From contig QPMI01000046.1 in assembly GCA_004431415.1 (NCBI GenBank), positions 89,815-153,814 on the forward strand: DNA of 64,000 nucleotides. Direction: 5' to 3'. This DNA is from Cyanophora paradoxa CCMP329. Its lineage: Eukaryota; Plantae; Glaucophyta. The position numbers were made by a program, and so were the translations under genes. Every line of letters begins with the position of its first letter. The stretch's first letter is position 1. The notes under the pieces were generated by a model. It worked only from the letters and a program-made list of their open reading frames with translations, made no database searches and was not told the DNA's origin. Positions 3,685-64,000 of the stretch are shown piece after piece.

Positions 3685-4039
3685 CCCGGCGCCCGCCCCC
3701 CGTTCCCCTCCCCCCGCAGCTTGGACCGAAGCTTGAGCCGACTTTCGATCTCACAGCACGACGAAGGGGTAGGGGAGGGGGGAGAGGCTGAGGGGCACCG
3801 AGACCTCCCGGCACTTGTACAGGATGAGCTGGCGGGGCGGGCGAGCGGCCATCGCAGCGAAGAGCTCGAACAGCGGCTCGGCGAGGCGCCCCATGTGCGC
3901 CCTGCGGCGGCGCGGGCGTGTGAGCAGCGGGCGGGCGGGCGGGCGGGCGGGCGGGCGGCGCAGCGCGGCTCGCCCGGCGACATAGACGATGAGGGGGTGC
4001 GGGCACTCGAGGACGATGCGGCTGGCCGTGCGGATGATC

Positions 4040-5862: not shown

Positions 5863-5938
5863 TGGGGCGCCAGTCCTCGGGGTCGAGCGCGAAGGAGTAG
5901 ACGTAGATCGGGCGCTTGGGCACGGTGGTGTGGTGCTC
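5861..5938 (-). pseudogene. Micro-fragment of an NCLDV-type double-jelly-roll major capsid protein (C-terminal motif)
   Basis: Encodes EHHTTVPKRPIYVYSFALDPEDWRPT, matching the conserved NCLDV MCP motif HHT..P...IY.YSFAL.PE..QPSG. Confidence 0.75.
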
Positions 5939-5949
5939 CGACGCCCGGG

Positions 5950-6262
5950 GAGGGACCGCAATCACCCTGCAGGCCGCCCCCGCGGACCCAGCGCTCCGGG
6001 ACGACGGGTGGCCGGTCTCATACGCGGACGTCCGGGGCGGCCGCCTCGTGCGCATCGAGCTCGAGATCTACACTGTGCCCCCTTCGCACGCAGACACCGC
6101 CCTGGTTGGCATCCTTGTCGATACCCACAGCGTTGGACCCGACGAGGTCCCCTGTCACACCACCGGCCAGCTGGCCCTGTCCGCCTCTGCCACCCTCCTC
6201 CACGGGCTCCGCATCCAACCCTCGGCTGGGCGCAGGTTCCTTTCAGGCTCGTACTGCGTTTT
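5950..6262 (+). pseudogene. Second, inverted paralog fragment of the fibre-like C-terminal domain
   Basis: GWPVSYADVRGGRLVRIELEIYTVPPSH aligns with minus-strand GWPIAPADVSAGRLARIRLEIYSLPPDH (about 5205-5290). Confidence 0.65.
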
Positions 6263-39785: not shown

Positions 39786-42700
39786 ATGGCGGGCGCGCCC
39801 GGCTCCTGCCGGCGCGTGGTCGCCGGCCGGCCGCGGCCCAGCAGCTGCAGCCTGGCCTCGACCATCCTGGCGATATTCGTCGCGTCTGCGTTTGTCCTCT
39901 CCGCCGTGCACGCGGTGATCATGAACCCCCGCGAAGCTGGAGACATGGGTCCCGTGTGCGTCCTAGGCCTCTTCTGGATCATGATCATGCGCTTGCGAAG
40001 ATAGCTATAGGCGCGCGCAATATCTTATCTCGTAGCTAAGACTTCGCCGCTCTCTCCAGCGGCGTCCAGGGCCGCCCCGGAAAACGCTTTTCCGACGGTG
40101 CGGTCGGCGACAAGCCCATCCTCTCGACGTACGTCAAGGGCGACGGCACAAGGGGCAGCGGCGGCTTGCCGCTACCCAGGGCTTGGGACGGCAGCCAGAT
40201 CAGAAATGATTCAGTCACGAAGACCCCTTACATCCGTGCGCCACGCTCTTGATGCATGCACATGCATGCATAGCATTCACGGCTAATGTGGGCGATGCTC
40301 AACAGACATCCAGAGAATCGGCAACTGGTGGGACCCGCCGGGAGTAGAGTCCGGCAAATCATCGCAAGGGTTCTCGTCGGTCAACTGCTGGCCTGTGGGC
40401 GACACGACGACCGATCACCCGGCCCCCAACAGCAATACTGGCGGCGGAAGGTTCGGCGGTCGTGGACCGATGAGTACGTGTTCAATGCAATGCAATGCGC
40501 AATGCAATTAATTCTGCAATTGCAATTGTTTCTGAACTTTCGATTTCGTTGTGGCTCTGTTATCAGGGGAATGGTACTGGTGGTGCGTATTGTTTAAATT
40601 TTGCGGTGGAATAAATGAAGATATATGTATGTGCATATATAATCAATTCATTGACTCACTGCGATCAGCCACAAGTACATGAACACACCGATGAAAGCCA
40701 CATCCGTTTACTTCACGTTGAGCATCTTTTAACGCTTACTTAGGATACCTTTTATCCTGAAATTTAGCCTGCAGCACGTTCCACCCTGACACCTACCAAA
40801 ATTTCCCTGATATCGGAACGAATACCGGCTACGTTAATACCGCTTTCACTCACACTTACAGTGTATGTCTGGCTTTACACGTTTTGCGACACCGCCTGAC
40901 AGTCAACAGGTGGAATTCGTGCGGTCGAATAAGGGCGACTCGACAACCTATCCTGTTGGCTCGGTGTCTCGAATTAAGGATGTTCTGAACAACCCGTCTC
41001 CGGACAGGAACACGTTTGCATGGAAATGGCCTGAAGATGACGTGCGTTCTGCGTATTCTAGATCTGCGTATTGTTGTGATGAATTAATTTCTTGAAAATC
41101 GCAGACCCGCGTTGGGACATTCGATCTCATCGCCACGTGTGGAAATGTGACCATCACCAATACTGATATAGGTTCACGAGCTCTGTGTATGGATGTATTT
41201 GTGGTCGATGTGCCCTGCTCATAGTTGCATATGCGGCGATTCGTTCAGATCCTGTAACGAAAACGATTGACGCATACGTCCAGTGTGCGAAGCCCATCGT
41301 TCTCAACTACGCGGTGCGTTTTGCAAGATTTTCGAAGGATCATGTTTCTGATAATCTAATATCTGAGCAGTGGTGTCTCAAGTGCGCTCTGATCGTTTGA
41401 TGATGTTGGACGATCGTATCTTTTGTAATGCAATTGATAACATTGGGTCCTCATGATTGCACCGCAGAATCAAGCGGGTTGACAAACCCGGAGGTGAGCC
41501 CCACTGCGCATGCGCTGTATATGCCTGGTAGGATGCAATCAGATGCTGATGCAATCGCCCGGACGTTCGCGTGCCACGACGTTAGCGCGCTTCTCGGTAA
41601 TCTTTTATGTTCACTTTCAAAACATCAACTACAAACAAACTCCTCACTTTTTTCGATCAGATGACGTCTTTGTTCGACCCAACGTGGTATCGTCTCTTCT
41701 CTCCTAGCCGTTTGGATATGATGGGGTCCCTCTCTCGCACTCGTCAACACTACCTTGGGTGTGTGTTGGAATTTGATTTTCTGCAGTTTAATCTTGACTG
41801 TCAATTTAGATTCCGCGAGCCGTATGAAGTGAAGAGGTCCACAGCCCTTGCCACGTGGACCGCAACGATCGGGGCGGAGCTCACAAGAGCGGGCGGAAAA
41901 TCGGGAAAAGAAGCAGGAGGTGGCTCGGTAAGTCCTAGGCCTTGCGCGAAACCGATCTGATCGACTTCTCACTTCGCCGCGCCAGTTTCCTCGTTGGCTT
42001 GGTGCTCAGTTTTGATGCTCCATGCTAGATTCTTATGCGCATATGCACCCGCACATACGACGCTTGCAAAATTGACTCGATTCCCGATTCGCTTCGCTGT
42101 TGTCCAGGCCATTCGCTTGGGTGCGGCTGTGCTGAGACTCGTATTCTTTGATCCTCGAGCTCTGACGCGCTCTCCACAGCGAGCTGCAGTACTCGTACAA
42201 CTTCAAGGACTACCAGGCGATCCAAGACCTCGACGAGAACTACAACTGGGATAAAATGCTCCTTCCCCTCAGTACTTCTCAGACCTGGAATACCGAAGAA
42301 AGGTACATAGTCAGTTCATGTTTATGCTGAGACAGTAGGTGCTGTGCGCGTTCCTGGGCTGAATCGTTCGAGGAAAGATTGTGCGTCAACGACCAGAACT
42401 CCGAGTATCGGTGAGTGCCTGGCGGTGACCCTTTTTAGCAATATAGCATGTACCCGAGTACCTGAATGAGCTCGAACAGACCCCTCTTCGAGATCCGCGG
42501 CCACATGGGTCTGAGGATCTGGTTCTGCTCTTGAAGCGAACAATTTCTGTTTCTCATATCCGATTACGCAGCTGTCAACGAAGAAAACCGCCCGCGTGGC
42601 GCCTACCCTCTCCCATGGGACTTCTATCTCCCAGACTTCGCGAGGGGGCTCTACAACCACACCGACTACTTGGTCATCGGGAAACACATCATGACAGCCA

Positions 42701-45700
42701 TCAACGCCCGCACGGGCTCGCTCGGCAGCAGCGGGCCGATCCCCGACGACATCCCTGTTGGCTGGACTCGCCAGCGCCGCGCGGCGCACGGCCTCTTCGT
42801 AGACATCGACAAGGATGGGGTGAGTGGGCTCTTTTTTATTTTGAATGTCCTCCTGATATTGATGACTCGCGCGACACGCGATCGTCCACTGTGCAGTGGA
42901 ATACGTGGCCAGGTGGGCGGCGCGCCGTCAACTCTGATAAGCCCTGTCTGATGCGTCTGCGCGCAGTGTGGGACGACTACATCGAGGCGGTGGACCCCCA
43001 AGCGGACGGCACGTGCTCGAAGAATGGGACCGGGTGCAGGACGGGAAGGTGCGCACTTAGTGAGAGAGCCACTTTAATTGAATTTCCTCTCCTCACTCTC
43101 TGTCAGGCAAATGGCCTACTGCGGCGTACGAACTCTGTTTTTTAAAAAGTGCACTCGATGTTCTTTGCCAGCTTCTGATCCTATCATTACATGCAATTTT
43201 TCGTTGCCCGTACCAGGATTTTATCGTGCGCGAGTATATCCGCGGTCGCGACCGCATTTGATTTCTACAACTACTGACTGTCCATACCAATCGCAGACGC
43301 AAGGGATTCCGATCGAAGGTTGGGGGACAACTTACAGGGGGGGGTCAGCGAAGGTTAATCTACTCGGCCCGTATTTGGTTCGTTCAAGGCGTCGAATTCG
43401 AATGCAAAGCCCCTAAGGTTTCTCAGGATACCACTGCTGGCGGCAACAATGTGGTCGCCTACAAGAGTCCGAAGTCCGGAATCAGGAATGTGACGGTGGA
43501 AAACGACGGGATAACGGTCGTGCACGTCATCCCCGGTACCCCCGACGGCATCAACCCCGATGGAGGCGTCGGCTACTTGACGCACATACACACGTGCCTA
43601 CTTTTTAATACGTATACCCTGCAGCTGCGATGCACGCTCTTAAACCCCGCAGCTATTTCTTCCGCGAAGACGGCGACAACTTCGAGATTTACATCGATTA
43701 CACCATCGTGTAAGTAATGCGTCTTCCTGCACACGCACGCAATGCGAATGAAAGGTCTTTCTAACAACTGAATGAATGTGCTCAGAAATGATAACCCGAA
43801 GAACTGGGGCGTCGAAAAAGGTAATACATTCGAGTTTTGGTTGTGCAAAGAAAATGGAACCAACCGCGGCCCCTGTAGTGAACTACTACATTCGTCAGAT
43901 CGACCCGGACATCGACCAGCAAAAAGGTACTATTGTTTATACTCTTTTAACGACGCGACTTCCGTGAGGCTGCACCAGGAACTCTGGCTGGTATTAACAA
44001 CACGGCGCAAATCCCTGCCGGGCTCGATCGCGGCGACTCCAGATACATCCACTGGGGCCCGTCGCGGTTTGTTTGTTCAACTTCAGATTATTCTCTTCAT
44101 GCTTTATTGCGCTATCGTTTCCGCTGTATTCAAATCACTACAGGCAAGCGTACGATGCCAACATGGCGGATGTGTCGTCCGGAGTTTTCGAGGGCGTAGA
44201 CTTCTCGAAACCAGAGGACAAAGGCAATTGGTTCATCAACCCGAACTCGAAGACCACTCCATCTAAGCGCGGTAAGGAGATTTATTGCAACTTTCGCAAA
44301 ACGGTGACACGCAAAACGCATTTCGTCCTCTGCTTTTGTAGAAATGCACGGTATGTATGCTTTCTTTGATCCACGGTGCTCTTGATCATGATCTAGCAAG
44401 CTCACTCGTTGCATCATCCAGTCACCAAGAACAAGGTTTACAGACAGCCGAGCAACGAAAACAACCCCAACGGCCAGGGCACGATTGCAGCGATTGGTGC
44501 CAAGGGCCTCCTCTTCGGTGCGCCTGCCAATGTTCCGGAATGAGAAAGCGGACGAGAAGCGAACCCACCTGACCACTCCCCGTCCACGCGCAGAGCGCTG
44601 TTTCGTTGGGTGCGCTTGCTGTTGGTTGTGATCAGCAAATTCATAGTTCTGAACTCGAGCAGGCTCGCCCACGACGAAGGCCAGCAGGGGTCGCACAACG
44701 CTAAGGCGCAGGTTGGACTGGGCTTCAGTCCAGACACGGGCGTTTCAGGTGAAATTCTTCCTGACCCCACCCTGACGAAGCTCGAGGAAGCGAAAACGGC
44801 GATCGGATACGAGAACATCGCAAACGATCTCCTCACTCTTTGGCTCGACTGGAGGAAGCGGCACGCTGCGTACCTCGTCCCCAAGGACGGGCTGTCAATC
44901 CAGTTCGCCTATGTCTTCACTGAGGGGCGATTGCAAAACTGGACCGACTTCCAGCGCTGGCACGCGCCGAAGCCGGAGCCCATCGGCCTCGACTACATGG
45001 TCAGGTGGAAGAATCCGAACGGCTCCAACCCTGAGGAGCGTCTCACGCCGTACGGCTACAACATTCTCGTCATTCTGGTGAGTTGTTTTCCTTCTTCCGA
45101 TGAACATGAGTTCCGTGCCAGCAAGTTGACAAACATATTTCAATTACAGCTGAAAACGTCTCCTGCTCCTGTGCAAATACCTGGATCGGATCCTCCGCAG
45201 TACGCCGACCTGACAGCAGTCCAAGACCACGAACGCGTAACACACGTGGTGAAGAACATCGCGAACACGACCGAGTCGTTGGACCTGATGACTTTGGAGC
45301 CGCTGCCCTTCTACTGGATGTGCATTAAAGACCGCGTCTACCGGATCCTCCTCCGCGCCATGAACAGATTTGGTGAGGACCTTCACGTAGTTGAATGCGC
45401 ACTCGTGATCACAGCGATCACACGCGTACGCGCTTTGCGCAGGGGGCTATCGCGAAAGCAGCAGGGATTTCAAAGCGCAGAACTGCACCGGTTCTCCGCC
45501 AGTGCCGCCTCCGGATCCAACGCCTCCCCCCGCCCCAACCATTCAAGCCCAGATCAAGGTTGGTCGAAGCGTTTACGCATTCCCTTTCTGAAGAAGACGC
45601 ACGTCGTAGGAGTCTCACGCGCGCACGCTTGCAGGCGGAGGTCTCGCCTCCGCCGGGGGACAGCCTGAACATTTGCGAGAAGCAGACGGTCGTCATCCGC

Positions 45701-48700
45701 TGCAACTCCTCGTCCGCAACCTACCCGGGGTACGTGGAGAAGGCCAGCCAGAAGTGGTATGACCGCCGGAGCGGCTTGATCAACGACCTTACCCTGTGCG
45801 CACCCGTGAATGATTCCGGTCCAGATGCTGATGAGTATCCCTAACGGTGCAAATGAACGATTGCGCAGGTATCAAAACAAAGAAATTTCCTCGCCTCCTT
45901 CGTTCTACCAGGCGACCGCCAGCAATGATAATACTCTGACCTTGACCCCCGAGTACCTCAAGACCATCAAGTACTCGCTGAGTAAGTGGTTGTGTTGCTT
46001 TAAACCTTTTCATCTTTCCGGCGCTCACCGGTGACCCCGATAATCTTCTGCAGACACGAATTACTACATTGTGCGCGATTTACTTCGATATTATTCAATT
46101 TTGTTAAAACATTTTTCGATATTAAATTATGGCCACTCTGCAGGGCTGCGAAGCCCAAGCGGTCGATCCTGAGAGCGCTGGAGACACGATTTACTCCAAC
46201 TTTCCTGAAGCGACTGTTCGCTTCATCGGCCCGCCGGCTTCGAGGAACCCAGGAACTTGCACCGTTTCGCCGACTTCGGCCATCTTCCAGGAGGCGACCT
46301 TCACAGTGACGTGTTCAAACTGGCAGCCACCATTCAACGCGGCAAACGCGCTTCCGCTCACCTACGCGCTCAAGGTGCAAGCGAGTTTTTGCGCAAGGTA
46401 GTTTTCGAAAACTGCAACATCTGACGAATCGCACTTTGCAGCTGAATGCGACGGGCGAGGTTCTTGTGCCGGCTGGCTCTAGCAGCACTATGACCCCTTC
46501 ATACGTCTTCCCGGCCGGCAATCACGGCCTCGTCGTGACAATCTGCTCCAACAACGACTGCGGATGCTCCGGTACGATCTCGCATTGAATTCGCCGCTTT
46601 CCTTGTCGCTGAGCCGTGCTCAACTCGTGCGCAGACGTTCCGCTTAAGATCTCCGTCAAGCCGAAGCTCTCAGTGAAAGTCGAGGTGCCGCAGCGATGTC
46701 GATGGCTGGGCGCTGCTCGGGGCACTGGAGGTTGACGTTCCACAGGTGGAGGTATCGCCCCCGCCGGGAACCCCGGACACTGCATGCCTCAAGCAAACCA
46801 TCGTCGCCCGCTGCACCTCCTCGGCCACCGGCTACGAGACCTACCCCACCCTGGCCATACAGACGTGGTCTGCTCCGAATGGCGAGTCGATCCTGGCGAA
46901 CCTGAACAGCTCCCCGTGCGAAATCGCCGTGCTCTAGATAATAAGCTCGAATTCATTTGCGTCTGGCGCAGTTACTTCAAGGCAGTCTCGAAGGTCGATG
47001 ATTCCCTGACCTTCACGCCGGATCTTCGCCCTGCCTTTGCTATCAGTGAGCCCAACGATTCTCTTCTCGTTTGTCGAAGACCCTAAGCGTGCATTGTCTT
47101 TTGGCGCAATGTTTCTGCAGACACGAACTACGTTATTGTCAGTTCTTCCTCCGCCGTTTTTCTTCTGCGCACAGTTTAATATGCATTTTTCGTATAATTT
47201 GCAGCGCTGCTCTGCAACCGCGGACGACCCTACGAACCCGGGCACTCTCCTCGCGGCGGTAACCGACCAGGCCACTATCCGGCTGATCGGCGCGCCTGAG
47301 ACCTCGCCTGCTGGCCGGGGAACCTGCACGCTTGAGACGATCGTGGGCTTGTATCCTGAAACGCGCTACAAAGTCACGTGCTCGGGCTGGAGCGCCCCGT
47401 TCAACGTCGAGAAGGCGCTCCCGCTCACGTACTCCCTAAAGGTTAGCAGCTCTTGAGTCGGACGCCTTGCTCCGCGAAGCTGCGTCTGACCGCAGGCTTT
47501 GCAGCTGAAAGACAAGGTCCTGGTGGCGCCCTCGACGACGGCGGAAATGATCACCGCCGACGTCCCGTTGGGAACGCACACGCTCGTCGCGACCATCTGC
47601 TCGCCCAACGAGTGCGGCTGCTCCGGTGCGTGGGATGCTGTAAAAGCCGTGACGAGTCAGATTTTGAAGCCGAGATCCCCCGTTCTTTCGCAGAATTTGC
47701 GCTCCCGCCCGTGGTTGTCAAGGCCATTTTCAACGTTAAGGTCCAGGTACTCAACTTTTTGTTTCGGCATATAGAGCTGCATGGGCGGATCGCCGACTGG
47801 GCGTGCACAGGTCGAGGTCTTCCCGCCGCCAGGAACGTCCGAGAGCGTCTGCTACAAGCAGACCTACGTCGCCCGCTGCCTCTCATCCGCCATCGGCTAC
47901 CCCAACTACCAGAACCTCGCGATCCAGCGCTGGTCCGCGCCGAACGGCGAGCCGATACTGGCGAATCTCAACACTTCCCCGTGCGTGTTCGATTCGAAAC
48001 TGAATGAATTTGACCTGACCCGTTTCGAATACTTGACAGGTACTTCAATGCGTCTTCAAAGGTCAATGATTCCCTGACCTTCACGCCGGAACTCCGCCCT
48101 GCCTTCGAGTACAGTGAGTGCTGAGCTTTTCTCGGAATCTCCACGTGCTTCCTTGCTTGACTTTTCTTCTGCAGACAAAATATACAAGCTTGTCAGCCAT
48201 TTGTATGTGATCTGTTCGACTGTATCTAAACTCGAGCCGCCCTTCGCAGAAATGCTACGCGACGGCGCCCGACCCTGAAGATCCCAGCGTCGAGCTCCCC
48301 TCGGTGGCCGACGAGGCCACGGTTCAGCTCATCGGCCCGCCGGCGTCTCAGAACCCCGGCACCTGCGCGATCTCGCCGACGGAGGGCACGTTCATCGCGA
48401 CGACCTTCACCGTGTCGTGCCCCGGCTGGACCCCACCCTTCAACCTGGGGAAGGCCCTTCCGCTCACCTACTCGCTCGTGTGGTCCAAGGCGCGCTCCAC
48501 CCCTTCAGCTTCGAGGCGAATTCGAATGCGCCATCCACATCTTATCGATTGCCGCGCAGTCGCCATCGGAGATTCTGGTCCGGCCCCAACTCAACAGCGT
48601 CATGACCGTCCCCCCGATTCAAGTCGGCGAGCACACCGTCACCGCTGTCATCTGCTCGAACAACACTTGCGGGTGCTCTGGTGCGGATTACATGCCCGCT

Positions 48701-51700
48701 TCGAAATCATCCCCGCTTCAACCTCTGAGCCGCTCTGTGCGCAGAGGTGCCGATGAAGGTCACGATCAAGCAGCCGGACGACCCCTGCACGACGTACAGC
48801 AGCACGATGGCCGTGATCAGCGCGCAGTTCGCCGCCGGCACCATCACCGAGCAGCGGAAGACCATCATGGAGGCCGAGGCGATCGAGGCGCTGAGCAGGC
48901 ACTACGTGGGCCTGGGTGCGTCCAAGTCTGAGCTTGATCATGAATTCGAAGTAGAACGAATCGTGCTTGACGCCCAGCTTTCGTGCAGGGCAACCGCCTT
49001 GCTTGAACACCCTTATCGACAACGCGTGCTCAGCCGGTAGCGCTGCGCAGCGGCTGCAGAACCTTGCCAAGAACACGGGCGATATTGGAAAAGCGTTCCC
49101 AGAGCTGGAGGCGATGCTGAAGGCCATCAACACGCTGGCCAATGTCTCCAGCTCGTTCGTCTTTGCTCGTATCATTCGTTCATATGTCTGAGCATTTACC
49201 ATTCGCTTGCAACAGGTTCGTCAACTCGACGCTCTTCGAGAAGCTGACGAGATGCAAGCCCGAATTTGACCCGTGCGACTTTTTGAACCTCGATCTCAGC
49301 GTCTATTTGGAGCAGGTGCTCATATGTTACCTATAAGTAGCCATTCAAACGAAATGTGTATTGATGTCCCTTGCGCAGACCACTCAAGAGCTCTCCGCCG
49401 CCATCGCGAGCCCGGACTGGGTCGGCACCGCTGGCACGGGCCTCACCGGGCAGGCCGAGGCGTCGAGCAGCCCGCTCGCCAACCTGCTCAACACGCTCAT
49501 CAAGGGGCCCCAGGGCCGTCTCGCCAAGTGCGCTTATTCTTCACGCCACGACCTTGCAATTGCCTGTTCCAACACTGGGCTTCGGCACTGACGTCGACAC
49601 TTCTTCCTCTCCCAGCTGTCGGAGCTGCGAGGATGGCCTCCGTGGGGCAGCTGCCGATGCAGCAGCTGTGGTGCGCATTCTGTTTTCTTGACCATGTTCA
49701 TAACGAATCTCCAGAATACCGCCACTGAGTAAGCCCCGCTCGCTTGCACTTTGAACGCAACAGACGGCTGGCAAGAGTGCGTTTCACTTTTCCGATTTCA
49801 ATTTACAATAAGAATCGCTCTTGAACCATGTTTTGTCTTCTTACAGTTTGCTTCACGAACATCAAGTGCGAATTCGGAGCCTTGGATTTAAATTAATGCT
49901 TCTCGCCCGGGACTCGTTTGATGTCCAACGTTAACCCTCGCCTGCAGGGTCTACTACCCTATCCCAACTACTGCTGGCGGCTTTGGCGTCAACCCGGCAC
50001 TCGTCTTGCTTCCCTTCGAGGTCCGCGACTTCGTGCCCAAGGACGGCGGCCAAGACGGGTTCGAAACCTTCTCCTGTCCTTTTCTCGACGTGTTCTCGGG
50101 GATTCTCAGCCCTCTGCGCATCTCAAAACCGTAGATTCGGCGTGTCCATTCTCAACATGGAGCGGTCGCCGTGGCCGCCCGTCTGGAGGGGCCCCGAGGG
50201 CGGCCTGATCGTCGGCGCCGTCAAGATCACGGGCGGCTTCGTCGACATCTCGGTGCGCTCCGCTTCTTCGGAAGTGACGACCAGGCGGAATGCTTACAGC
50301 GATCGGCGCTCAGGTTCTCGGCTTCCGGATTGAGGGTCTCTCGCACGCGAAGCCGATTATCATCGAAATCCCGTACCCGGTCAATCAGACAACGATGCCG
50401 ACGGAGCAGCAGTACCTCATCTTCTGGAACGAGACCTCCAATAGCTGGGAGCCGTGCCAGACGCGTTATAAGCCGAAAATCAACATGTGGGTGCGTGATC
50501 GTTTGCACCTCTGTCAAGTAATTGAAGAAGAGCCGATGCCTAATCGCGATCGCTTCAGCTCGGCGTTGCGGATAACCCCGACCCGATGGCGACAAACGCT
50601 GGCGATCTCTTCCAGCGTAATGTGCGACATTCTTGATTTAATGCAAAAAAAGAAGCCTCCTCATGATCTCGTGCCAATTATGAACGTAGGGTATCTGGTA
50701 TGCTCGTGGATTCTGCACGCATTTGGTGCGTCGTCTGCCATTCGCACATGCGGACGCGTTGTTTTTTATTAATGCATTTTGTGCGCAGACCACGGCAAGT
50801 CTGAAAAACCATCCTGCGTTATCTGCGAAATGCAAACTTTTTTCTAATATCGTCGCGCAGTTCACACTTGGCCAAATCATTCCAAACTACTTCTCGGCAG
50901 GCCAGCCGGCATTCGCCGCTGGCATTAGCGAGCTCCCGCCGCAAGATGGTGATCGTGGCCAGGGCAACAGCAACCAGGTGACCCCAGTCGCTCTTATTCC
51001 CAAAAAAGTAGTGATTTTTAATAACACGTTCGAATTCCTGTCATCTGTTACAGATGTCGCACATCCTGCCGCTCGCGTTCGGCATCGGCGCTGCCGGTCT
51101 CCTCGTCGCTGGCCTCACCGCGGCGATCGTGAAGGGCACCCTCCGCGTGCCCAGCATCTTCCCGAAGGGCAAGGCGACGACCCCGTACGAGCCCTACACG
51201 GGCTCGGGCACCGGCACCGGCACCGGCGAGGGCGCGGGCGTTGGCTCACGGGACCTCGGCGGCCTGGGGAAGACGCCCTACAATCCGACAGGGCCGGGAG
51301 CTGGGTTGCCGGGCTCCGGGCTGGAGGCGCCGGCCCCGAGCCCGCTCGCCCCGTCGAACCTCTCCCTCACGAGCGCCGGCGAGAAGGGCCCCGGCTCGGG
51401 CAAGCTCACCTGGACGCCGCCGCTGGCGGGCCAGCCCGCCGGCTACAACGTCCTCCGCGACGGCGAGCCCATCGGCACCGCCCCCGGCAACCGCACGGAG
51501 TACCCGCTCTCCGGCCTTCCGACCAACGGCAAGCCCACGAAGCTGCAGCTCGTTCCATTCGACGAGAACGGCGTCGCCGGCCCGCCGTCGCACCCCCTCA
51601 CGACGGCCCTTCCCAGGGATCCGAACAGTGGCATCGCGCTCACGGCCCAGCCGATGGGCCCCGGCCCGAACCCCAGCGGCCATCTCGCCTGGAACACGCC

Positions 51701-54700
51701 TGCTACCGGCGCTGCGGGCGGCATCGGCGGCTACGCAATTCTCCGTGACGGCCAGCAAGTCGGCGTGGTCAAGCCCCCGAGCCCGACGCCGAGCGGCCTG
51801 AACACCTACACGGTCCGGAACCCCGGCTACAACCCCGGCGAGGAGGCGTTGTTCTCCGTGGCGCCCATCTCGCCCAGCGGCGAGATCATCGGCGCCCCGA
51901 GCGGCAAGGCTCCGTTGACTTCGTACCCGATCGGCTCCGGCGCGGGCCCGAACGCCAGCCAGCCGTCGATGGCGCCGACGGGCCTGCAGCTGACCAGCGC
52001 CGCCGGCATGTTCAGCTCCGGGAAGCTCTCCTGGAACCGCCCTGCCAGCGGGAGCCCGGCCAGCTACGGCATCGTCAGCGATGGCGAGATCGTGGGCACC
52101 GTTTCGGGTAGCGCGACCTCCGCCGACGCGCCGCGCGGCGGCAAGGTGTTCCAGGTCCTCCCCATCGACCGCTTCGGCAACGTCGGCCCTCCGTCGCTGC
52201 CCGCGTCGGGCGATCCCGGGATGGGCGCCCCTGGCCCTTACAACCCACTCATCGGCCCGGGCGCCGGCATCGCCGGCTCTGCCGTCGAGGGAATTCCAGC
52301 GAGCCCGCTCGCCCCCTCGGACCTCGCCCTCAGCAGCTTCAACGGCAGCGGCCCCGGCTCCGCCACCCTCTCGTGGCGCCCGCCTCAGAACGGCACTCCC
52401 AACAGCTACACCGTTCTCAAGAACGGGAAGCCCATCGGCAGCGTGCCCGGCAGCCAGACCTCGATCCCGGTCTCCGACCTGCCGACCAACGGCAGCCCAT
52501 CGACCCTGCAGGTCATTCCGTTCGACGAGAAGGGCTACGCGGGCCCGGCCTCGTCGCCGCTTGCCAGCGTCCTGCCGCGCGACCCGAGCTCCGGCATCGC
52601 CCTCACCTCGACGCCCATCGGCAACCCGAGCAACCCGAGCGCGCTTCTTTCCTGGACCACTCCCGCGAGCGACCTCCAGCCCGGCGCCGGCGGCCCTCCA
52701 GGGTGCGAATTCTCCCGCGAAACAGTGCTAGCGCAAGATTTCAAGCGAGCATTTGAGAGCAACGTTTTGATGGCTGACTTTCGGCCTCTCGCCAGGTACG
52801 CCGTGCTGCAGGACGGCCGCCAGATCGGCACCGTCAAGCCGTCGCCCTCCGGCATCAACTCGTTCACCGCGAAGAACCTGCCGAGCAGCACCGTCGCCGA
52901 GTCCCTCTTCTCCGTTGCACCCATCTCGCCCGCCGGCGACATCATCGGCCCCGCCAGCAGCAGCGTGCCCCTGCTCTCGTACCCCGTCGGCTCGGGCGCG
53001 GGCCCGGCGCCTCAGACGGCTATGATGCCCTCCAACGTGCAGCTCACGAGCACGCCGGGCCTCTTCGGCTCGTCGGGCCGTCTCTCGTGGAACCCGCCGG
53101 CGGCCGGCTACCCGGCTAGCTATGCCGTGGCGGAGGACGGCAAGGTTACCAGCACAGTTCCCGCCAACCAGACGACCTACGAGGTCTCTCCGAAGCCCGG
53201 CAGCGTCTACCAGGTCCTGCCAATCGACCGCCTTGGCTCTACCGGCCCTGCGTCACAGCCGGCCGTCAGCGGCAGCGATCCTTCCGGTGCCTCCGCTACA
53301 CCTTACGGCCCTTCGAACACTTTGATGGCGCCTGGCGCGGGCATTGCCGGATCTGGGCTTCGCGCGCAGCCCCCGAACCCGCTTGCCCCGTCGAACCTCG
53401 CCCTCAGTAGCTTCAACGGCAGCGGCCCCGGCTCCGCCACCCTCTCGTGGAGCCGCCCAGACAAGGGAGTTCCGGCGAGCTACACCGTCCTCAAGGGCGG
53501 CGTGCCCATTGGCAGTGTCCCTGGCAACCAGACCTCGATCCCGGTTTCCGGCCTGCCGAACACCGGTGGCGCTACAACCCTGCAGGTGGTGCCGTTCGAC
53601 AGCAACGGCGTTGCGGGCCCCGCCTCTGCTCCGCTTTCCGCCACGCTGCCTAGCGACCCGCGGACGGGCATCGCCCTCACCTCGACCTTGTCGGGTCCTG
53701 CGACGAACCCCGGCGCCGTTCTGTCGTGGACGACTCCGTCGGCAGCTCTCGAGCCTGGAGCGGGTGGTCTTGCGGGGTGAGCGTCGCATCTGAATCTCTT
53801 TAGTAAACTAATAAGTTTGCCGAAACTTTGTCGCTGAGGCACCTCTCTTGTTGCAGCTTCGCAGTCCTGAAGGACGGCGTGAAGGTGGCCAATGCAACGC
53901 CGTCCCCGACGGGTGTCAATGCTTTCACGATCAAGAGCCTCCCGCCCTCGGCCGGCGACTCTCTCTTCTCCATCATGCCTCTGTCGGCCAATGGCACGCC
54001 TATCGGGCAGGCAAGCAACAGTGTGCCGATCTCATCGTACCCGGCCGGCTCGGGCGCGGGCCCTGCGAGCCCAGCGGACATGGCGCCGTCGAACATGCAG
54101 CTGACAAGCTCGCCGGGTCTCTTCGGCTCATCGGGCCGCCTCTCGTGGAGCCCGCCGCGCGCGGGCAGCCCCGCGAGCTACGCTGTCGTCGGCAACGGCA
54201 AGGTCCTCGGCACCGTTCCGGCCAACCAGACCGCTTTCGACGTGACGCCCAAGAGTGGCGAGGCTGGCAGCGTCTACCAGGTGCTCCCAATCGATCGCTA
54301 CGGCAATGTTGGCCCTCCCAGCAGCCCGATTTCAAGCTCCGGCCCGGCTCCTGGCCCGTACAACGGCACTGGCGCCGGCGCGCCCGTTAGCGCTGATCCC
54401 TCTTCTCCGTACGGGCCCTCTTCTGGCCCCGGTGCGGGCATCGCTGGCTCTGGCGTCGACGTGCCCCCGTCGAATCCTCTCGCCCCGTCGAACCTCGCCC
54501 TCAGCAGCTTCAACGGCAGCGGCCCCGGCTCCGCCACCCTCTCGTGGAAGCGCCCGGCCTCGGGCTCGCCGGCCTCGTTCACCGTCCTCAAGGACGGCAA
54601 GCCCGTCGCGTCGGTCCCCGGCGGCCAGACCTCGGCCCCGGTCTCCGGCCTGCCGACCAACGGCGGCGCCTCGACCCTGCAGGTGGTGCCGTTCGACGAC

Positions 54701-57700
54701 AACGGCGTCGCGGGCCCGGCCTCCTCGCCGCTCGCGGCCTCGCTGCCGAGCGACCCGAGCTCCGGCATCGCGCTGACGTCGACGCCGGCGGGCTCCGGCT
54801 CCAGCCCGAGCGTAATTCTGTCGTGGACCAGCCCCGCCGGCCAGGGTGGCGTGTCGAGGTAGGTTTCTCGAATGCTGACACACTGATTCAAATGATTGAT
54901 TGGTATGCTCTTCTGCGCAGCTATGCTGTCATGCAAGACGGCCAGAAGATTGCATCGGTGCAGCCTTCGCCATCGGGCGTCAACACGTTCGCTTCGCGCA
55001 ATCTCCCTCCGGCAACTGCCGCGAAATCCCTCTTCTCTGTGGTTCCGCTGTCTCCTTCGGGCAGCCCCGCAGGACCGGCCAGCAGCAGCGTTCCGCTTGC
55101 CTCTTATCCGGTTGGATCGGGAGCTGGTCCAGCAAGCCCGTCTGCCATGGCGCCGTCGAACCTGCAGCTGACGAGCACACCCGGCCTCTTCTCCTCCAGC
55201 ACCTTGTCGTGGAGTCGTCCGCGCGCGGGCAACCCCGCGAGCTACGCGGTCGTCGGCGACGGCAAGGTCCTTGGCAGCGTCCCGGCTATTCAGACAACGT
55301 TCGATGTCTCGCCCAAGAGCGGCGAGCCCGGCAGCATCTTCCAAGTCGTGCCGGTCGATCGGTTCGGAGCGGTCGGCCCCGCATCAAACCCAATTAACAG
55401 CGGATCTGGCCCGGCTCCCGGCCCGTACAACGGTGCCGGCCCGGACTCCCGCGGTGTTCCTTCGACTCCGTACGGCCCGTCGTCCGGTCCTGGCGCGGGC
55501 ATTGCCAGCTCAAACGTCAACCTGCCCCCTGCGAATCCACTCGCGCCCTCGAACCTCGCCCTCAGCAGCTTCAACGGCAGTGGCCCCGGCTCCGCCACCC
55601 TCTCGTGGAGCCGGCCCAGCCAGGGAGCGCCCTCTGCGTACTCTGTCCTCAAGGACGGCAAGCCCGTCGCGTCGGTCCCCGGCGGCCAGACCTCGGCCCC
55701 GGTCTCCGGCCTGCCGACCAACGGCGGCGCCTCGACCCTGCAGGTGGTGCCGTTCGACGACAACGGCGTCGCGGGCCCGGCCTCCTCGCCGCTCGCGGCC
55801 TCGCTGCCGAGCGACCCGAGCTCCGGCATCGCGCTGACGTCGACGCCAGTCGGTACAGTTTCGAGCCCAGGCGCGCTGCTGGCGTGGACTTCTCCTAGCG
55901 GCCTCGGCAACGTCCCCAGGTGCGGCAGCCGTATCTCGCGCGTGGGGTCGGCTCTGCGGGCGCTGACGCGCTTTTGTGCGGCAGCTTCGGCGTCCTGCAG
56001 GACGGCCGCCAGGTCGCCACTGCCAAGGCCTCGCCGTCGGGCGTCAACACCTTCGCGCCCAAGGGCCTCAGCCCGAGCGCGGCGGCCAACGCGGAGTTCT
56101 CGGTGGTGCCGCTGTCGCCGTCGGGCAGCCCCGCGGGCCCCGCCAGCAACAGCGTGCCTCTTGCCTCGTACCCGGCCGGCTCGGGCGCGGGCCCCGCGAG
56201 CCCTGCGGACATGGCGCCGTCGAACCTGCAGCTGACGAGCTCGCCGGGCCTGTTCGGCTCGTCGGGTCGCCTCTCGTGGAGCCCGCCGCGCGCGGGAACC
56301 CCCGCGAGCTACGCTGTCGTCGGCAACGGCAAGGTCCTCGGCACCGTTCCGGCTAGCCAGACCTCTCACGAGGTTCCGGATCTTTCGCCAAGCAGCGTGT
56401 ACCAAGTCCTGCCAGTCGCGTCGAACGGCGCTGTTGGCCCCGCCTCGAGCCCTGTCACTGGCAACTCTGCCACCACTGGCGCCCCGAGTGCTGGCTCGCG
56501 CTCTGTTCCGTTTGGCCCTTCGAGTCCTTCCGCAGGGCCCGGAGCGGGCATCGCCGGCTCCGGCGTTGAAGTACCATCATCGAGTCCCCTTGCGCCCTCA
56601 AACCTCGCCCTTAGCAGCTTCAACGGCAGCGGCCCCGGCTCCGCCACCCTCTCGTGGAAGCGCCCGGCCTCTGGCTCGCCGGCCTCGTTCACCGTCCTCA
56701 AGGACGGCAGACCCGTCGCGTCGGTCCCCGGCGGCCAGACCTCGGCCCCGGTCTCCGGCCTGCCGACCAACGGCGGCGCCTCGACTCTGCAGGTTGTGCC
56801 GTTCGACAGCAACGGCGTCGCGGGCCCGGCCTCGTCGCCGCTCACGGCCTCGCTGCCGAGCGACCCGAGCTCCGGCATCGCGCTGACGTCGACGCCGGCG
56901 GGCTCCGGCTCCGGCCCGAGCGCGCTCCTCTCCTGGACCACCCCCACCGCTGCTCTCAGCTCAGACGCTGGTGGCCTCGCAAGGTGCGATTTATTACCGT
57001 ATTTTGTACCGAGCGTTCTCTGATAAGCGAATGCACGTCATCCAGCTTCGCCATCATGCAAGACGGGAATAAGATTGCGTCGGTGCCGCCGTCGTTGACC
57101 GGCGTGAATTCCTTCCCCGTCAAGGGCCTTTCCCCGAGCGCAGTCGCCACTTCGCGTGTCTCCGTTGTGCCCCTGTCGCCGAACGGCTCTCCGATTGGGC
57201 AGAGCAGCAACAGCGTTCCGCTCGCTTCGTACGCAGCGGGCTCGGGAGCGGGTCCTGCGAGTCCCGCGGAGATGATGCCGACGAACCTCCAGCTAACAAG
57301 CGCACCGGGCCTCTTCTCTTCCAGCACTTTGTCATGGAGCCGTCCGCGCGCGGGCAACCCGGCGAGCTACGCAGTCGTCGGCGATGGGCAGTTCCTCGGG
57401 GCCGTCCCTGCTATCCAAACGTCGTTCGAGGTTTCGCCCAAGAGCGGCGAGCCCGGCAGCGTCTACCAGGTCGTGCCCCTCGACAGCTTTGGAACAGCGG
57501 GCCCGTCGTCAAATCCGGCAAGCAGCGGCTCAGGCCCGTCACCTGGTCCGTACAATGGGGCGGGAGACGGACCTCTCTCCGGCCCCTCTTACCCGTATGG
57601 GCCCTCGTCTGGCCCTGGCGCCGGCATCGCGAACTCTGGCGTGGACGCGCCCGCCCCGAGCCCGCTTGCCCCGTCTAGCCTGGCCCTCAGCAGCTTCAAC

Positions 57701-60700
57701 GGCAGCGGCCCCGGCTCCGCCACCCTCTCGTGGAAGCGCCCGGCCTCGGGCTCGCCCGCCTCGTACACCGTCCTCAAGGACGGCAAGCCCGTCGCGTCGG
57801 TCCCCGGCGGCCAGACCTCGGTCCCGGTCTCCGGCCTGCCGACCAACGGCGGTGCCTCGACCCTGCAGGTGGTGCCGTTCGACAGCAACGGCGTCGCGGG
57901 CCCGGCCTCGTCGCCGCTCGTGGCCTCGCTGCCGAGCGACCCGAGCTCCGGCATCGCGCTGACGTCGACACCGACGGGCTCCACTTCAAGCCCGAGCCCG
58001 CTTCTGGCGTGGACCACGCCGAGCGGCCTCGGCAACGTCCCGAGGTGCGGCAGCCATGTTTCGCGCGCGGGGCCGGCTCTGCGGGTGCTGACGCGCTTTT
58101 TCGCGGCAGCTTCGGCATCCTGCAGGACGGCCGCCAGGTCGCCACTGCCAAGGCCTCGCCGTCGGGCGTCAACACCTTCGCGCCCAAGGGCCTCAGCCCG
58201 AGCGCGGCCGCCAACTCGTACTTCTCGGTGGTGCCGCTGTCGTCATCGGGCAGCCCCGCGGGCCCCGCCAGCAACAGCGTGCCTCTCGCCTCGTACCCGG
58301 CCGGCTCCGGCGCAGGCCCCGCACACCCCGCGGACATGGCGCCGTCGAACCTGCAGCTGACGAGCTCGCCGGGCCTCTTCTCGTCGAGCCGCCTCTCGTG
58401 GAGTCCGCCACGCGCGGGCAACCCCGCGAGCTACTCGGTGATCGGCGACGGCAAGGTCCTCGGCACCGTTCCGGCCAACCAGACCGCGTTCGACGTCTCG
58501 CCCAAGAGCGGCGAGCCCGGCAGCGTCTACCAGGTTGTGCCGGTCGCGGCGAACGGCGCGGTGGGCCCGGCCTCGAATACGGCCACCAGCGGCTCGGGCC
58601 CGGCGCCCGCCTACAGCGGCGCAGGCGCCCCCGGCTACGGTGGCGCTGGCGCGGGCCCGTACGGGCCCTCGTCTGGCCCCGGCGCCGGCATCGCGAACTC
58701 TGGCGTGGACACGCCCGCCCCGAGCCCGCTCGCGCCCTCGAGCCTGGGCCTCAGCAGCTTCAACGGCAGCGGCCCCGGCTCCGCCACCCTCTCGTGGAAG
58801 CGCCCGGCCTCGGGCTCGCCCGCCTCGTACACCGTCCTCAAGGACGGCAAGCCCGTCGCGTCGGTCCCCGGCGGCCAGACCTCGGTCCCGGTCTCCGGCC
58901 TGCCGACCAACGGCGGTGCCTCGACCCTGCAGGTGGTGCCGTTCGACAGCAACGGCGTCGCGGGCCCGGCCTCGTCGCCGCTTGCGGCCTCGCTGCCGAG
59001 CGACCCGAGCACCGGCATCGCGCTGACGTCGACAAGCTCTGGTGCCGGATCTAATGCGCTGCTGGCGTGGACCACTCCGAGCGGCCTCGGCAACGTCCCG
59101 AGGTGCGGCAGCCGTGTTTCGCGCGCGGGGCCGGCTCTGCGGGTGCTGACGCGCTTTTTCGGGGCAGCTTCGGCGTCCTGCAGGACGGCCGCCAGGTCGC
59201 CACTGCCAAGGCCTCGCCGTCGGGCGTCAACACCTTCGCGCCCAAGGGCCTCAGCCCGAGCGCGGCCGCCAACTCGAACTTCTCGGTGGTGCCGCTGTCG
59301 TCGTCGGGCAGCCCCGCGGGCCCCGCCAGCAACAGCGTGCCTCTCGCCTCGTACCCGGCCGGCTCCGGCGCGGGTCCCGCGAGCCCCGCGGACATGGCGC
59401 CCTCGAACCTGCAGCTGACGAGCTCGCCGGGCCTCTTCTCGTCGAGCCGCCTCTCGTGGAACCGTCCGCGCGCGGGCAGCCCCGCGAGCTACTCGGTGAT
59501 TGGCGACGGCAAGGTCCTCGGCAGCGTCCCGGCCAACCAGACCTCGTTCGACGTCTCGCCCAAGAGCGGCGAGCCTGGCAGCGTCTACCAGGTTGTGCCG
59601 GTCGCGGCGAACGGCGCGGTGGGCCCGGCCTCGAATACGGCCACCAGTGGCTCGGGCCCGGCGCCCGCCTACAGCGGTGCAGGCGCCTTTGGGTCCCCGT
59701 CATTCGGATACGGCACTCCTGGTGCAGGGACCGGATATCCTGCAGGCAGCCGCGACGGCCCATCCTATGGCCCCGGTGCGGGCATCGCTGGGTCGGGTGT
59801 CAACGCACCTGCCCCGAGCGCACTTGCACCCTCGAACCTCTCTCTCAGCAGCTTCAACGGCAGCGGCCCCGGCTCCGCCACCCTCTCGTGGAGCCGCCCG
59901 GCCTCCGGCTCGCCGGCCTCGTACACCGTCCTCAAGGACGGCAAGCCCGTCGCGTCGGTCCCCGGCGGCCAGACCTCGGTCCCGGTCTCCGGCCTGCCGA
60001 CCAACGGCGGCGCCTCGACTCTGCAGGTTGTGCCGTTCGACAGCAACGGCGTCGCGGGCCCGGCCTCGTCGCCGCTCACGGCCTCGCTGCCGAGCGACCC
60101 GAGCTCCGGCATCGCGCTGACGTCAACGCCGGCGGGCTCTGGCTCCAGCCCGAGCGCGCTGCTGACGTGGACCACGCCTGCTGCTTTCGGCAACGTCCCG
60201 AGGTGCGGCAGCCGTGGTTCGCGCGCGGGGCCGGCTCTGCGGGCGCTGACGCGTTTTTTCGCGGCAGCTTCGGCGTCCTGCAGGACGGCCGCCAGGTCGC
60301 CACTGCCAAGGCCTCGCCGTCGGGCGTCAACACCTTCGCGCCCAAGGGCCTCAGCCCGAGCGCGGCCGCCAACTCGAACTTCTCGGTGGTGCCGCTGTCG
60401 TCGTCGGGCAGCCCCGCGGGCCCCACCAGCAACAGCGTGCCTCTCGCCTCGTACCCGGCCGGATCCGGCGCAGGCCCCGCACACCCCGCGGACATGGCAC
60501 CCTCGAACCTGCAGCTGACGAGCTCGCCGGGCCTCTTCGGCTCGTCTGGCCGCCTCTCGTGGAGCCCGCCGCGCGTGGGCAACCCTGCGAGCTACTCGGT
60601 GATCGGCGACGGCAAGGTCCTGGGCAGCGTCCCGGCCAACCAGACCACGTTCGACGTCTCGCCCAAGAGCGGCGAGCCCGGCAGCGTCTACCAGGTTGTG

Positions 60701-63700
60701 CCGGTCGCGGCGAACGGCGCGGTGGGCCCGGCCTCGAACCCCGCTTCCAGCTCGGGCTCCGGCTATGGGCCTGGCCCATACGCCGGCGTCGGTGCGGCGG
60801 CCCTGAGCGGCGCCGGCTACGGCGGCGCGCCGGCGGGATCGGACGGCCTGTATTCCTCTGCGATTAACCCGCGCGGCGATGGCGCCGGCCGCGCTACTTC
60901 GCCGACCGGTGCGTCCGGGTCCGGCAGCTTCGGCGGCGCGTTCGGCCCTGCCAGCCCGTCGAGCCCCGGCGCGGCATTGCCGGCTCTGGCGTGGACGCGT
61001 CGGCCCGAGCCCGCTCGCGCCCTCGAGCCTGGGCCTCAGCAGCTTCAACGGCAGCGGCCCCGGCTCCGCCACCCTCTCGTGGAAGCGCCCGGCCTCGGCT
61101 CGCCCGCCTCGTACACCGTCCTCAAGGACGGCAAGCCCGTCGCGTCGGTCCCCGGCGGCCAGACCTCGGTCCCGGTCTCCGGCCTGCCGACCAACGGCGG
61201 CGCCTCGACCCTGCAGGTGGTGCCGTTCGACAGCAACGGCGTCGCGGGCCCGGCCTCGTCGCCGCTCGCGGCCTCGCTGCCGAGCGACCCGAGCTCCGGC
61301 ATCGCGCTGACGTCGACGCCGGCGGGCTCCGGCTCCAGCCCGAGCGCGCTGCTGGCGTGGACCACGCCGAGCGGCCTCGGCAACGTCCCGAGGTGCGGCA
61401 GCCGTGTTTCGCGCGCGGGGCCGGCTCTGCGGGCGCTGACGCGTTTTTTCGCGGCAGCTTCGGCGTCCTGCAGGACGGCCGCCAGGTCGCCACTGCCAAG
61501 GCCTCGCCGTCGGGCGTCAACACCTTCGCGCCCAAGGGCCTCAGCCCGAGCGCGGCCGCCAACTCGAACTTCTCGGTGGTGCCGCTGTCGTCGTCGGGCA
61601 GCCCCGCGGGCCCCGCCAGCAACAGCGTGCCTCTCGCCTCGTACCCGGCCGGCTCCGGCGCGGGTCCCGCGAGCCCTGCGGACATGGCGCCCTCGAACCT
61701 GCAGCTGACGAGCTCGCCGGGCCTCTTCTCGTCGAGCCGCCTCTCGTGGAACCGTCCGCGCGCGGGCAGCCCCGCGGCTACTCGGTGATCGGCGACGGCA
61801 AGGTCCTCGGCAGCGTCCCGGCCAACCAGACCTCGTTCACGTCTCGCCCAAGAGCGGCGAGCCTGGCAGCGTCTACCAGGTTGTGCCGGTCGCGGCGAAC
61901 GGCGCGGTGGGCCCGGCCTCGAATACGGCCACCAGCGGCTCGGGCCCGGCGCCCGCCTACAGCGGCGCAGGCGCCCCCGGCTACGGTGGCGCTGGCGCGG
62001 GCCCGTATGGGCCCTCGTCTGGCTCTGGCGCTGGCATCGCCAACTCTGGCGTGGACGCGCCCGCCCCGAGCCCGCTCGCCCCGTCTAGCCTGGCCCTCAG
62101 CAGCTTCAACGGCAGCGGCCCCGGCTCCGCCACCCTCTCGTGGAAGCGCCCGGCCTCGGGCTCGCCCGCCTCGTACACCGTCCTCAAGGACGGCAAGCCC
62201 GTCGCGTCGGTCCCCGGCGGCCAGACCTCGGTCCCGGTCTCCGGCCTGCCGACCAACGGCGGCGCCTCGACCCTGCAGGTGGTGCCGTTCGACAGCAACG
62301 GCGTCGCGGGCCCGGCCTCGTCGCCGCTCGCGGCCTCGCTGCCGAGCGACCCGAGCTCCGGCATCGCGCTGACGTCGACGCCGGCGGGCTCCGGCTCCAG
62401 CCCGAGCGCGCTGCTGGCGTGGACCACGCCGAGCGGCCTCGGCAACGTCCCGAGGTACGGCAGCCTTGTTTCGCGCGCGGGGCCGGCTCTGCGGGCGCTG
62501 ACGCGTTTTTCGGGGCAGCTTCGGCGTCCTGCAGGACGGCCGCCAGGTCGCCACCGCCAAGGCCTCGCCGTCGGGCGTCAACACCTTCGCGCCCAAGGGC
62601 CTCAGCCCGAGCGCGGCCGCCAACTCGAACTTCTCGGTGGTGCCGCTGTCGTCGTCGGGCAGCCCCGCGGGCCCCGCCAGCAACAGCGTGCCTCTCGCCT
62701 CGTACCCGGCCGGCTCCGGCGCGGGTCCCGCGAGCCCGCGGACATGGCGCCTCGAACCTGCAGCTGACGAGCTCGCCGGGCCTCTTCTCGTCGAGCCGCC
62801 TGTCGTGGAACCGTCCGCGCGCGGGCAACCCCGCGAGCTACTCGTGATCGGCGACGGCAAGGTCCTCGGCAGCGTCCCGGCCAACCAGACCACGTTCGAC
62901 GTCTCGCCCAAGAGCGGCGAGCCCGGCAGCGTCTACCAGGTCGTGCCGGTCGCGGCGAACGGCGCGGTGGGCCCGGCCTCGAACCCCGCTTCCAGCTCGG
63001 GCTCCGGCTATGGGCCTGGCCCGTACGCCGGCGTCGGTGCGGCGGCCCTGAGCGGCGCCGGGTACGGCGGCGCCCCGGCGGGATCGGACGGCCTGTATGC
63101 CTCTGCGATTAGCCCGCGCGGCGATGGTGCCGGCCGTGCGACCTCGCCGACCGGTGCGTCCGGGTCCGGCAGCTTCAGCGGCGCGTTCGGCCCTGCCAGC
63201 CCGTCGAGCCCCGCGCGGGCATTGCCGGCTCTGGCGTGGACGCGCCCGCCCCGAGCCGCTCGCGCCCTCGAGCCTGGGCCTCAGCAGCTTCAACGGCGCG
63301 GCCCCGGCTCCGCCACCCTCTCGTGAAGCGCCCGGCCTCGGGCTCGCCCGCCTCTTACACCGTCTCAAGGACGGCAAGCCCGTCGCGTCGGTCCCCGCGG
63401 CCAGACCTCGGTCCCGGTCTCCGGCCTGCCGACCAACGGCGGCGCCTCGACCCTGCAGGTGGTGCCGTCGACAGCAACGGCGTCGCGGGCCCGGCTCGTC
63501 GCCGCTCGCGGCCTCGCTGCCGAGCGACCCGAGCTCCGCATCGCGCTGACGTCGACGCCGGCGGCTCCGGCTCCAGCCCGAGCGCGCTGTGGCGTGGACC
63601 ACGCCGAGCGCCTCGGCAACGTCCCGAGGTGCGGCAGCCGTGTTTCGCACGCGGGGCCGGCTCTGCGGGCGCTGACGCGTTTTTTCGCGGCAGCTTCGGC

Positions 63701-64000
63701 GTCCTGCAGGACGGCCGCCAGGTCGCCACTGCCAAGGCCTCGCCGTCGGGCGTCAACACCTTCGCGCCCAAGGGCCTCAGCCCGAGCGCGGCCGCCAACT
63801 CGTACTTCTCGGTGGTGCCGCTGTCGTCGTCGGGCAGCCCCGCGGGCCCCGCCAGCAACAGCGTGCCTCTCGCCTCGTACCCGGCCGGCTCCGGCGCGGG
63901 TCCCGCGAGCCCCGCGGACATGGCGCCCTCGAACCTGCAGCTGACGAGCTCGCCGGGCCTCTTCTCGTCGAGCCGCCTGTCGTGGAACCGTCCGCGCGCG
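39786..64000 (+). CDS. Giant polycystin-1/adhesion-receptor-like protein: signal peptide - unknown domains - 3 REJ-like modules - GAIN/GPS - single TM - FN3 array (3'-incomplete)
   Basis: Signal LASTILAIFVASAFVLSAVHA. Three modules GTC.(V/I)SP....F.V.C..W.PPFN...ALPLTY (45.6-48.8 kb). Helical region, then IFWNETSNSWEPC...GFCTHL|TT|FTLGQ. In-frame splice 50977 to 51054 leads into TM ILPLAFGIGAAGLLVAGLTAAIV-KG. Not every exon in 40-45 kb was resolved. Confidence 0.8.
51348..64000 (+). repeat. Coding tandem array of at least 12 units (about 0.96-1.19 kb), each with three FN3-like domains
   Basis: Unit starts near 51348, 52311, 53385, 54482, 55543, 56592, 57668, 58732, 59827, 61018, 62078 and 63263. 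FN3 pattern APSNL...ATLSW..P.......YTV......LQVVPF...G..GP.S.P. Confidence 0.9.

Follow-up and report, generated by a model that had tools for sequence, protein, structure and literature searches.

A giant single-pass membrane protein with REJ-like modules, a GPS-like motif and an FN3 array is most likely encoded by one many-exon gene of Cyanophora paradoxa

The stretch of Cyanophora paradoxa DNA analysed here (the window; 64,000 nt) most likely contains, as judged from its sequence, one many-exon gene for a giant single-pass membrane protein. The encoded protein is predicted to exceed 6,000 residues and to be a type I membrane protein specified by one spliced gene; with all of its parts taken jointly, this explanation is rather probable. 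The first-pass annotation of this DNA had proposed a single gene for a signal peptide, REJ-like modules, a GPS-like motif, one transmembrane (TM) helix and about 35 FN3 domains; the splice model, a held-out control and a paralog that continues in one frame support this layout, but not the GAIN fold that was part of it. The locus is a real, probably intact gene of a lineage-specific family. All strong relatives of known source are from C. paradoxa, distributed over at least 10 contigs, and matches outside this species are weak, the named ones being bacterial or metagenomic; a metagenome scan gave no match. The protein encoded by the window (P0002) stops at the window's last base; from this we infer a contig end at that base and a gene that is cut, with its C-terminus absent.

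The splice model was seeded with 20 hand-picked GT–AG introns, mostly of 61–80 nt. It is free of stops from the ATG at 39786 (forward strand, as for all features of this gene) to the TM exon, and predicts 68 exons and 67 introns (median intron 70 nt), including 15 exons of 20 nt or less, which together encode 2,151 residues upstream of the TM exon. From 51054 to 60960, nine predicted exons encode a further 3,116 residues without a stop. The annotated EukProt protein P0085 (tig00000180_g13646) equals the window tail without mismatch, except for a read-through intron of 31 aa, which identifies the window as contig tig00000180, and the EukProt matches to the long open reading frame from 51054 are C. 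paradoxa proteins. Under a model trained only downstream of 45635, the N-terminal part scores +184, compared with -86 to -164 for the controls (12 shuffles and the reverse strand). The two model runs place roughly one in three exon borders of the N-terminal part differently; thus, this part is real, with its details uncertain.

The start codon opens a predicted signal peptide (39786–39914; aa 1–43), recognised from sequence and hydropathy, with a basic n-region, an h-region at aa 27–42, VHA as the likely cut point, and a KD19 value of 2.51 (aa 27–43). The splice models place behind it an N-terminal ectodomain of ~1,000 aa (39915–45558), composed of ~36 short exons and ending in a Pro-rich spacer, for which exon-wise searches gave no Pfam or Atlas match. 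Three REJ-like modules follow (45635–46684, 46746–47746, and 47811–48770), each with ~230 aa and 8 Cys, and all built on a common exon pattern; module 1 has a 17-nt microexon inside. The presence of three such modules had been claimed earlier, and the Pfam profile search agrees, with a REJ match in each: E 6.3e-6 for module 1 (on exon 46144–46374), 1.2e-4 for module 2, and 8.3e-7 for module 3. All three matches are partial (profile positions ~312–351 of 452), and two are at or above the cut-off.

The region between the REJ-like modules and the stalk (48786–50884) is, from its sequence, likely to be a GAIN domain. By position and residue propensities, it begins with a helix-favouring region of ~200 aa (48786–49670), a candidate for GAIN subdomain A. 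The splice model and paralog comparison then give a beta-rich region of ~180 aa (49764–50884), a candidate for subdomain B, which contains the GPS-like motif FW..W..C ... CTHL|TTF. GAIN domains comprise ~320 aa, with a helical subdomain A and a 13-strand subdomain B, in that order (PMC3321182); the helical-then-beta region totals ~385 aa, and its order and size, as judged from residue propensities, fit subdomains A then B. Candidate subdomain B has 48–75% identity, exon by exon, to the paralog P0009 (tig00021532_g22184). The motif includes the His-Leu-Thr triad followed by x-Phe, and CTHLTTF is also present in P0009. In latrophilin-1, the disulfides are C834–C820 and C832–C801, and the catalytic residues are H836, L837, and T838 (PMC3321182). 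The triad and a counterpart of the C820–C834 pair are present in the two Cyanophora paralogs, and both Cys of the C801–C832 pair are absent from them; both GPS Trp are kept, and the kept Cys pair is spaced by 41 residues vs. 14 in latrophilin-1.

Profile and structure searches did not identify a GAIN domain. Even with E values of up to 10 allowed, neither the individual exons nor the uninterrupted stretch of the paralog matched Pfam GPS/GAIN, and a PDB sequence search of the GAIN exons also gave no match. An AlphaFold model of the last 125 GAIN residues of P0009 was too poor (pLDDT 46), and the fold search was without a match. In the Atlas, this region had a weak lead to ZU5 (0.88); ZU5 is a related self-cleaving fold. 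Homologue searches with the GAIN part found neither an annotated ectodomain nor another species, a blank that is weakened by length limits. For the GAIN-like region that the first-pass annotation described as ending in CTHL|TTF, the motif and its position were recovered, but a profile match and a confident fold were not.

The CTHL|TTF sequence arises only via a 6-nt microexon (50789–50794), which encodes Thr-Thr, including the predicted nucleophile, and which is followed by a GC–AG intron; the same Thr-Thr is found in the paralog protein. The unguided splice model chose this microexon unprompted. Its acceptor is at the 92nd percentile and its donor, although GC, is otherwise a good fit; without the microexon, the intron would be 135 nt, ~2x the usual length. 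Skipping of the microexon would keep the frame and lose the nucleophile. An alternative that we regard as unlikely retains the gene and topology as described, but has the GAIN-like domain uncleaved or drifted to a plain spacer, so that the protein would be an uncleaved tether or scaffold. The conservation of His-Leu-Thr followed by Thr-Phe in two paralogs that are ~50% identical nearby argues against such drift, as does the strong microexon acceptor, even though the absence of profile and fold matches to GAIN, the loss of one of two disulfides, the long insertion in the GPS hairpin, and the dependence of the nucleophile on a skippable exon would be expected from it. In BAI3, a crystal form that is not cleaved still has the fold (PMC3321182), which is compatible with loss of cleavage.

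The splice model predicts that a stalk of ~40 aa (50885–50977) connects the TM helix to the final strand of the GPS. The in-frame splice that had been proposed between stalk and TM exon is predicted as a phase-0 GT–AG intron of 76 nt (50978–51053), from the splice model and paralog comparison. In the public annotation, a separate gene begins at MSHILPL, which would imply two genes: one for a secreted REJ/GPS protein, and another for a membrane-anchored FN3 protein. EukProt g13646, g13624, and tig00000459_g1071 all begin at this Met, and the donor at 50978 is middling (31st percentile). However, a separate FN3 gene is unlikely because the two parts are 76 nt apart with an acceptor directly before the ATG, and because P0009 has GPS, stalk, TM, and FN3 in a single frame, with its TM exon starting with Leu rather than Met. 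The 23 residues before the TM helix in P0009 are, from the protein, likely to be a 69-nt read-through intron at the same place, and the public annotation contains a missed intron within g13646 too. We therefore consider two genes very improbable, and the charge rule would still place the FN3 chain in the cytosol if there were two. For the single spliced gene, the split in the public annotation means that its layout is missed by database searches. The P0009 cluster also includes a spurious 36-aa member, which leads to an unrelated animal-like contig (L001).

Hydropathy and charge count identify a single TM helix (51063–51131), with a net charge of -1 before it and +4 after it. Its KD19 value is 2.11, and apart from the signal segment no other segment of the model is near or above 2; additional TM helices upstream, looked for by KD19 in the preferred model, were not found. 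The hydropathy scan of the model thus bears out the signal peptide and one TM helix where the first-pass annotation had placed them. By the same measure, no 7TM or channel part is present within the window, and such parts were rejected as candidates; one TM helix, with FN3 directly after it, stands in their place, as had been proposed.

Given one gene, the FN3 tail is probably cytosolic, from several features of the sequence. The charge difference across the TM helix is +5, and +4 or +5 in P0009. There are 48 Cys in the ectodomain and 0 in the 3,086 residues of the tail; FN3 domains without Cys are normal on either side of a membrane. The FN3 units had been described as rich in sequons (NGS, NQT), as extracellular domains are, and the topology had been doubted on this ground. 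The tail has 26 sequons vs. 25.7 expected from composition (O/E 1.01), the NGS Asn is confined to the close subfamily, and the NQT Asn position varies (S/G/T/N) among divergent paralogs; sequon richness was rejected as a sign of an outer tail, the counts being at chance level. Since that doubt comes down to two chance sites present in repeated copies, a cytosolic tail is better supported than was earlier thought. The sequon test has low power, since the ectodomain itself shows no clear excess of sequons (O/E 1.21, p 0.2). P0031 combines six FN3 domains of the same type with a CBM20 (26.7 bits, above the cut-off) and a coiled coil, and has neither signal peptide nor TM helix; Cyanophora starch is cytosolic (PMC13666283). 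If P0031 is a Cyanophora protein, this FN3 type would work in the cytosol, although the P0031 model may be chimeric. For the proposed type I topology, these features are to be set against the low proportion of charged residues in the tail (7%), which resembles secreted proteins, and the weak charge bias (+1) of two other TM+FN3 relatives.

The first donor could be either of two sites that share a phase, GT at 39956 (4.9 bits) or GC at 39989 (1.9 bits), and the choice bears on a different topology. Use of the GC donor would extend the sequence behind the signal peptide by 11 hydrophobic residues, in a segment with a KD19 value of 1.85. This second hydrophobic stretch could flip the chain, or the TM helix could insert reversed, and in either case the FN3 array would be outside the cell or lumenal. 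We regard this as quite improbable: the GT donor is far closer to consensus, a flip would make the GPS and the Cys-paired REJ modules cytosolic, and the charge bias of the TM helix and the absent sequon signal both disagree with an outer tail. The GC donor nevertheless gives an intron of typical length (71 nt) and was chosen by the held-out model; the low charge of the tail and the identity of the nearest named relatives outside Cyanophora, which are bacterial FN3 proteins, would also suit an outer array.

The FN3 array (51342–64000), recognised from Pfam, motif counts, AlphaFold, and fold searches, consists of 12 units, each with domains A, B, and C plus a linker of Gly/Pro/Ser/Tyr. The motif count gives 12 A, 12 B, and 12 C domains, with the last C domain truncated where the window stops; these 35 domains and a fragment of the 36th match the earlier estimate of about 35. 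Each unit has one intron, which splits domain B. AlphaFold predicts the FN3 fold with a pLDDT of 84, and the seven-strand sandwich matches solved FN3 domains in fold searches. The description of the array as a titin-like rod was overstated, because FN3 trimers alternate with linkers of ~40–100 aa; beads on flexible linkers fits better. The long linkers contain an RGD tripeptide and Ser/Thr-Pro motifs (60870–60880 and 63115–63125), which are probably chance occurrences or kinase sites.

Within the array, the part from 60970 to 64000 has single-base deletions, which become denser toward the contig end; the deletions from ~60970 on are probably long-read consensus errors. The 65-nt introns of the late B domains (58045–63693) hardly differ from one another, and certain units have linkers of a common type (7/10 and 9/11); this sameness may be due to recent unequal crossing-over, gene conversion, or uncertain assembly. 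A copy of the TM+FN3 part with 97% identity is present on the same contig (P0003, tig00000180_g13624), and by this identity is a recent duplication. Taken with the frameshifts beyond ~60970 and the near-identity of late units and introns, it would accord with the present copy being a decaying duplicate, or partly mis-assembled, in which case the domain count would be an artefact of collapsed or expanded repeats. This is most improbable, as the first ~5,250 codons contain neither a stop nor a frameshift, and the late lesions are all single-base deletions, clustered at the contig end and with no extra substitutions.

Other family members in C. paradoxa differ in their outer and terminal parts. 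P0012 (tig00000396_g24884) lacks a GPS motif; its TIG repeats, which span ~3,200 aa and contain no Cys, are accompanied by one TM helix and the same type of FN3 tail. Thus, the FN3 tail is common to differing ectodomains. P0008, P0010, and P0086 have paralogous FN3 arrays whose C-terminus is a short, conserved hydrophobic helix carrying a C-x-x-C motif, possibly an acylation or dimerisation site. A GPI signal in this helix was rejected, because the helix abuts the last FN3 strand with no spacer.

The layout of signal peptide, REJ, GPS, and one TM helix is that of SpREJ1, and of SpREJ8 and SpREJ9, of the sea urchin, in which the GPS also precedes a single predicted TM helix and REJ is partial in SpREJ8 and SpREJ9 (PMC1934368). 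The likeness is one of layout, with Pfam REJ as the only sequence link. Unlike the Cyanophora protein, these proteins have no described FN3 array after the TM helix; the Cyanophora protein also has three short REJ-like modules and an N-terminal part without a family match. The polycystin-1/PKD1 family likewise has REJ-type Ig modules, a GAIN-like region, and a GPS before the first TM helix, but its PLAT domain, 11-TM channel part, and coiled coil were not found in the Cyanophora model within the window, which has the FN3 chain instead. Features in common with adhesion GPCRs (latrophilin-1, BAI3; PMC3321182) are the His-Leu|Thr site, one GPS disulfide out of two, and the helical-then-beta order; the Cyanophora protein differs in having no 7TM, a stalk of ~40 aa, and no FAVLM-type agonist consensus. 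The fusion of GAIN to 7TM is reported to be confined to holozoans (PMC12716839), and GAIN outside adhesion GPCRs is on record in non-holozoans (PMC3321182; PMC12716839).

For the tail, integrin beta4 offers an analogy only: it is a type I protein with cytoplasmic FN3 domains linked to the cytoskeleton (PMC2132717), but has four FN3 domains vs. at least 35 here and no GPS, and signs of homology are limited to the fold. Titin/twitchin and RIM-BP have intracellular tandem FN3 super-repeats and match in fold, although extracellular FN3 domains match equally well; by contrast with them, the Cyanophora protein is membrane-anchored, has no visible Ig or kinase domain, and has long Gly/Pro/Ser linkers and low charge. 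Neither REJ/GPS with one TM helix and an FN3 tail, nor an array this large, was found in the part of the literature searched. As single-TM proteins with REJ and GPS are already known (SpREJ1, 8, and 9), only the FN3 tail is new.

To our knowledge, nearly all that is understood about GAIN domains concerns those followed by a 7TM or channel part. In the Cyanophora protein, the ectodomain would enter the ER lumen, where the GAIN-like domain would cleave its own Leu2110–Thr2111 bond, His2109 acting as the base, and the cut halves would be held together by the last beta-strand. The TM helix would stop transfer and leave the FN3 chain in the cytosol, such that the cut would yield a membrane piece composed of stalk, TM helix, and FN3 chain. 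As neither a 7TM nor a channel is present as the target of a tethered agonist, the cut would most likely serve as a breakable or sheddable joint. By analogy with integrin beta4, the protein may connect the cortical skeleton with the cell exterior, or with the lumen of the cortical alveoli, via a long multivalent chain of FN3 trimers; its binding partners and host membrane are guesses. Cyanophora is wall-less, and has alveoli and an epiplast beneath the plasma membrane (PMC6212826). A bolder and tentative proposal is that of a Cyanophora-specific self-cleaving single-pass family in which GAIN would be a mechanical fuse, with the outside or alveolar lumen on one side of it and, on the other, a cytosolic chain of tens of FN3 domains anchored at the epiplast or cortical microtubules; the 6-nt microexon would toggle cleavage by splicing. 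If true, a cytosolic FN3 chain as the output would show GAIN function without a tethered-agonist target, and would provide a simple test of a force-limited joint. The family would also supply named candidates for links in the glaucophyte cortex (plasma membrane, alveoli, and epiplast), whose proteins are mostly unlocalised (PMC6212826).

Two further coding regions were observed in the window: a gene split by introns for an AAA ATPase, which has a Walker A motif and by eye resembles katanin/spastin (34277–35470, forward strand), and an intron-free open reading frame of 858 aa (3482–6067, reverse strand).
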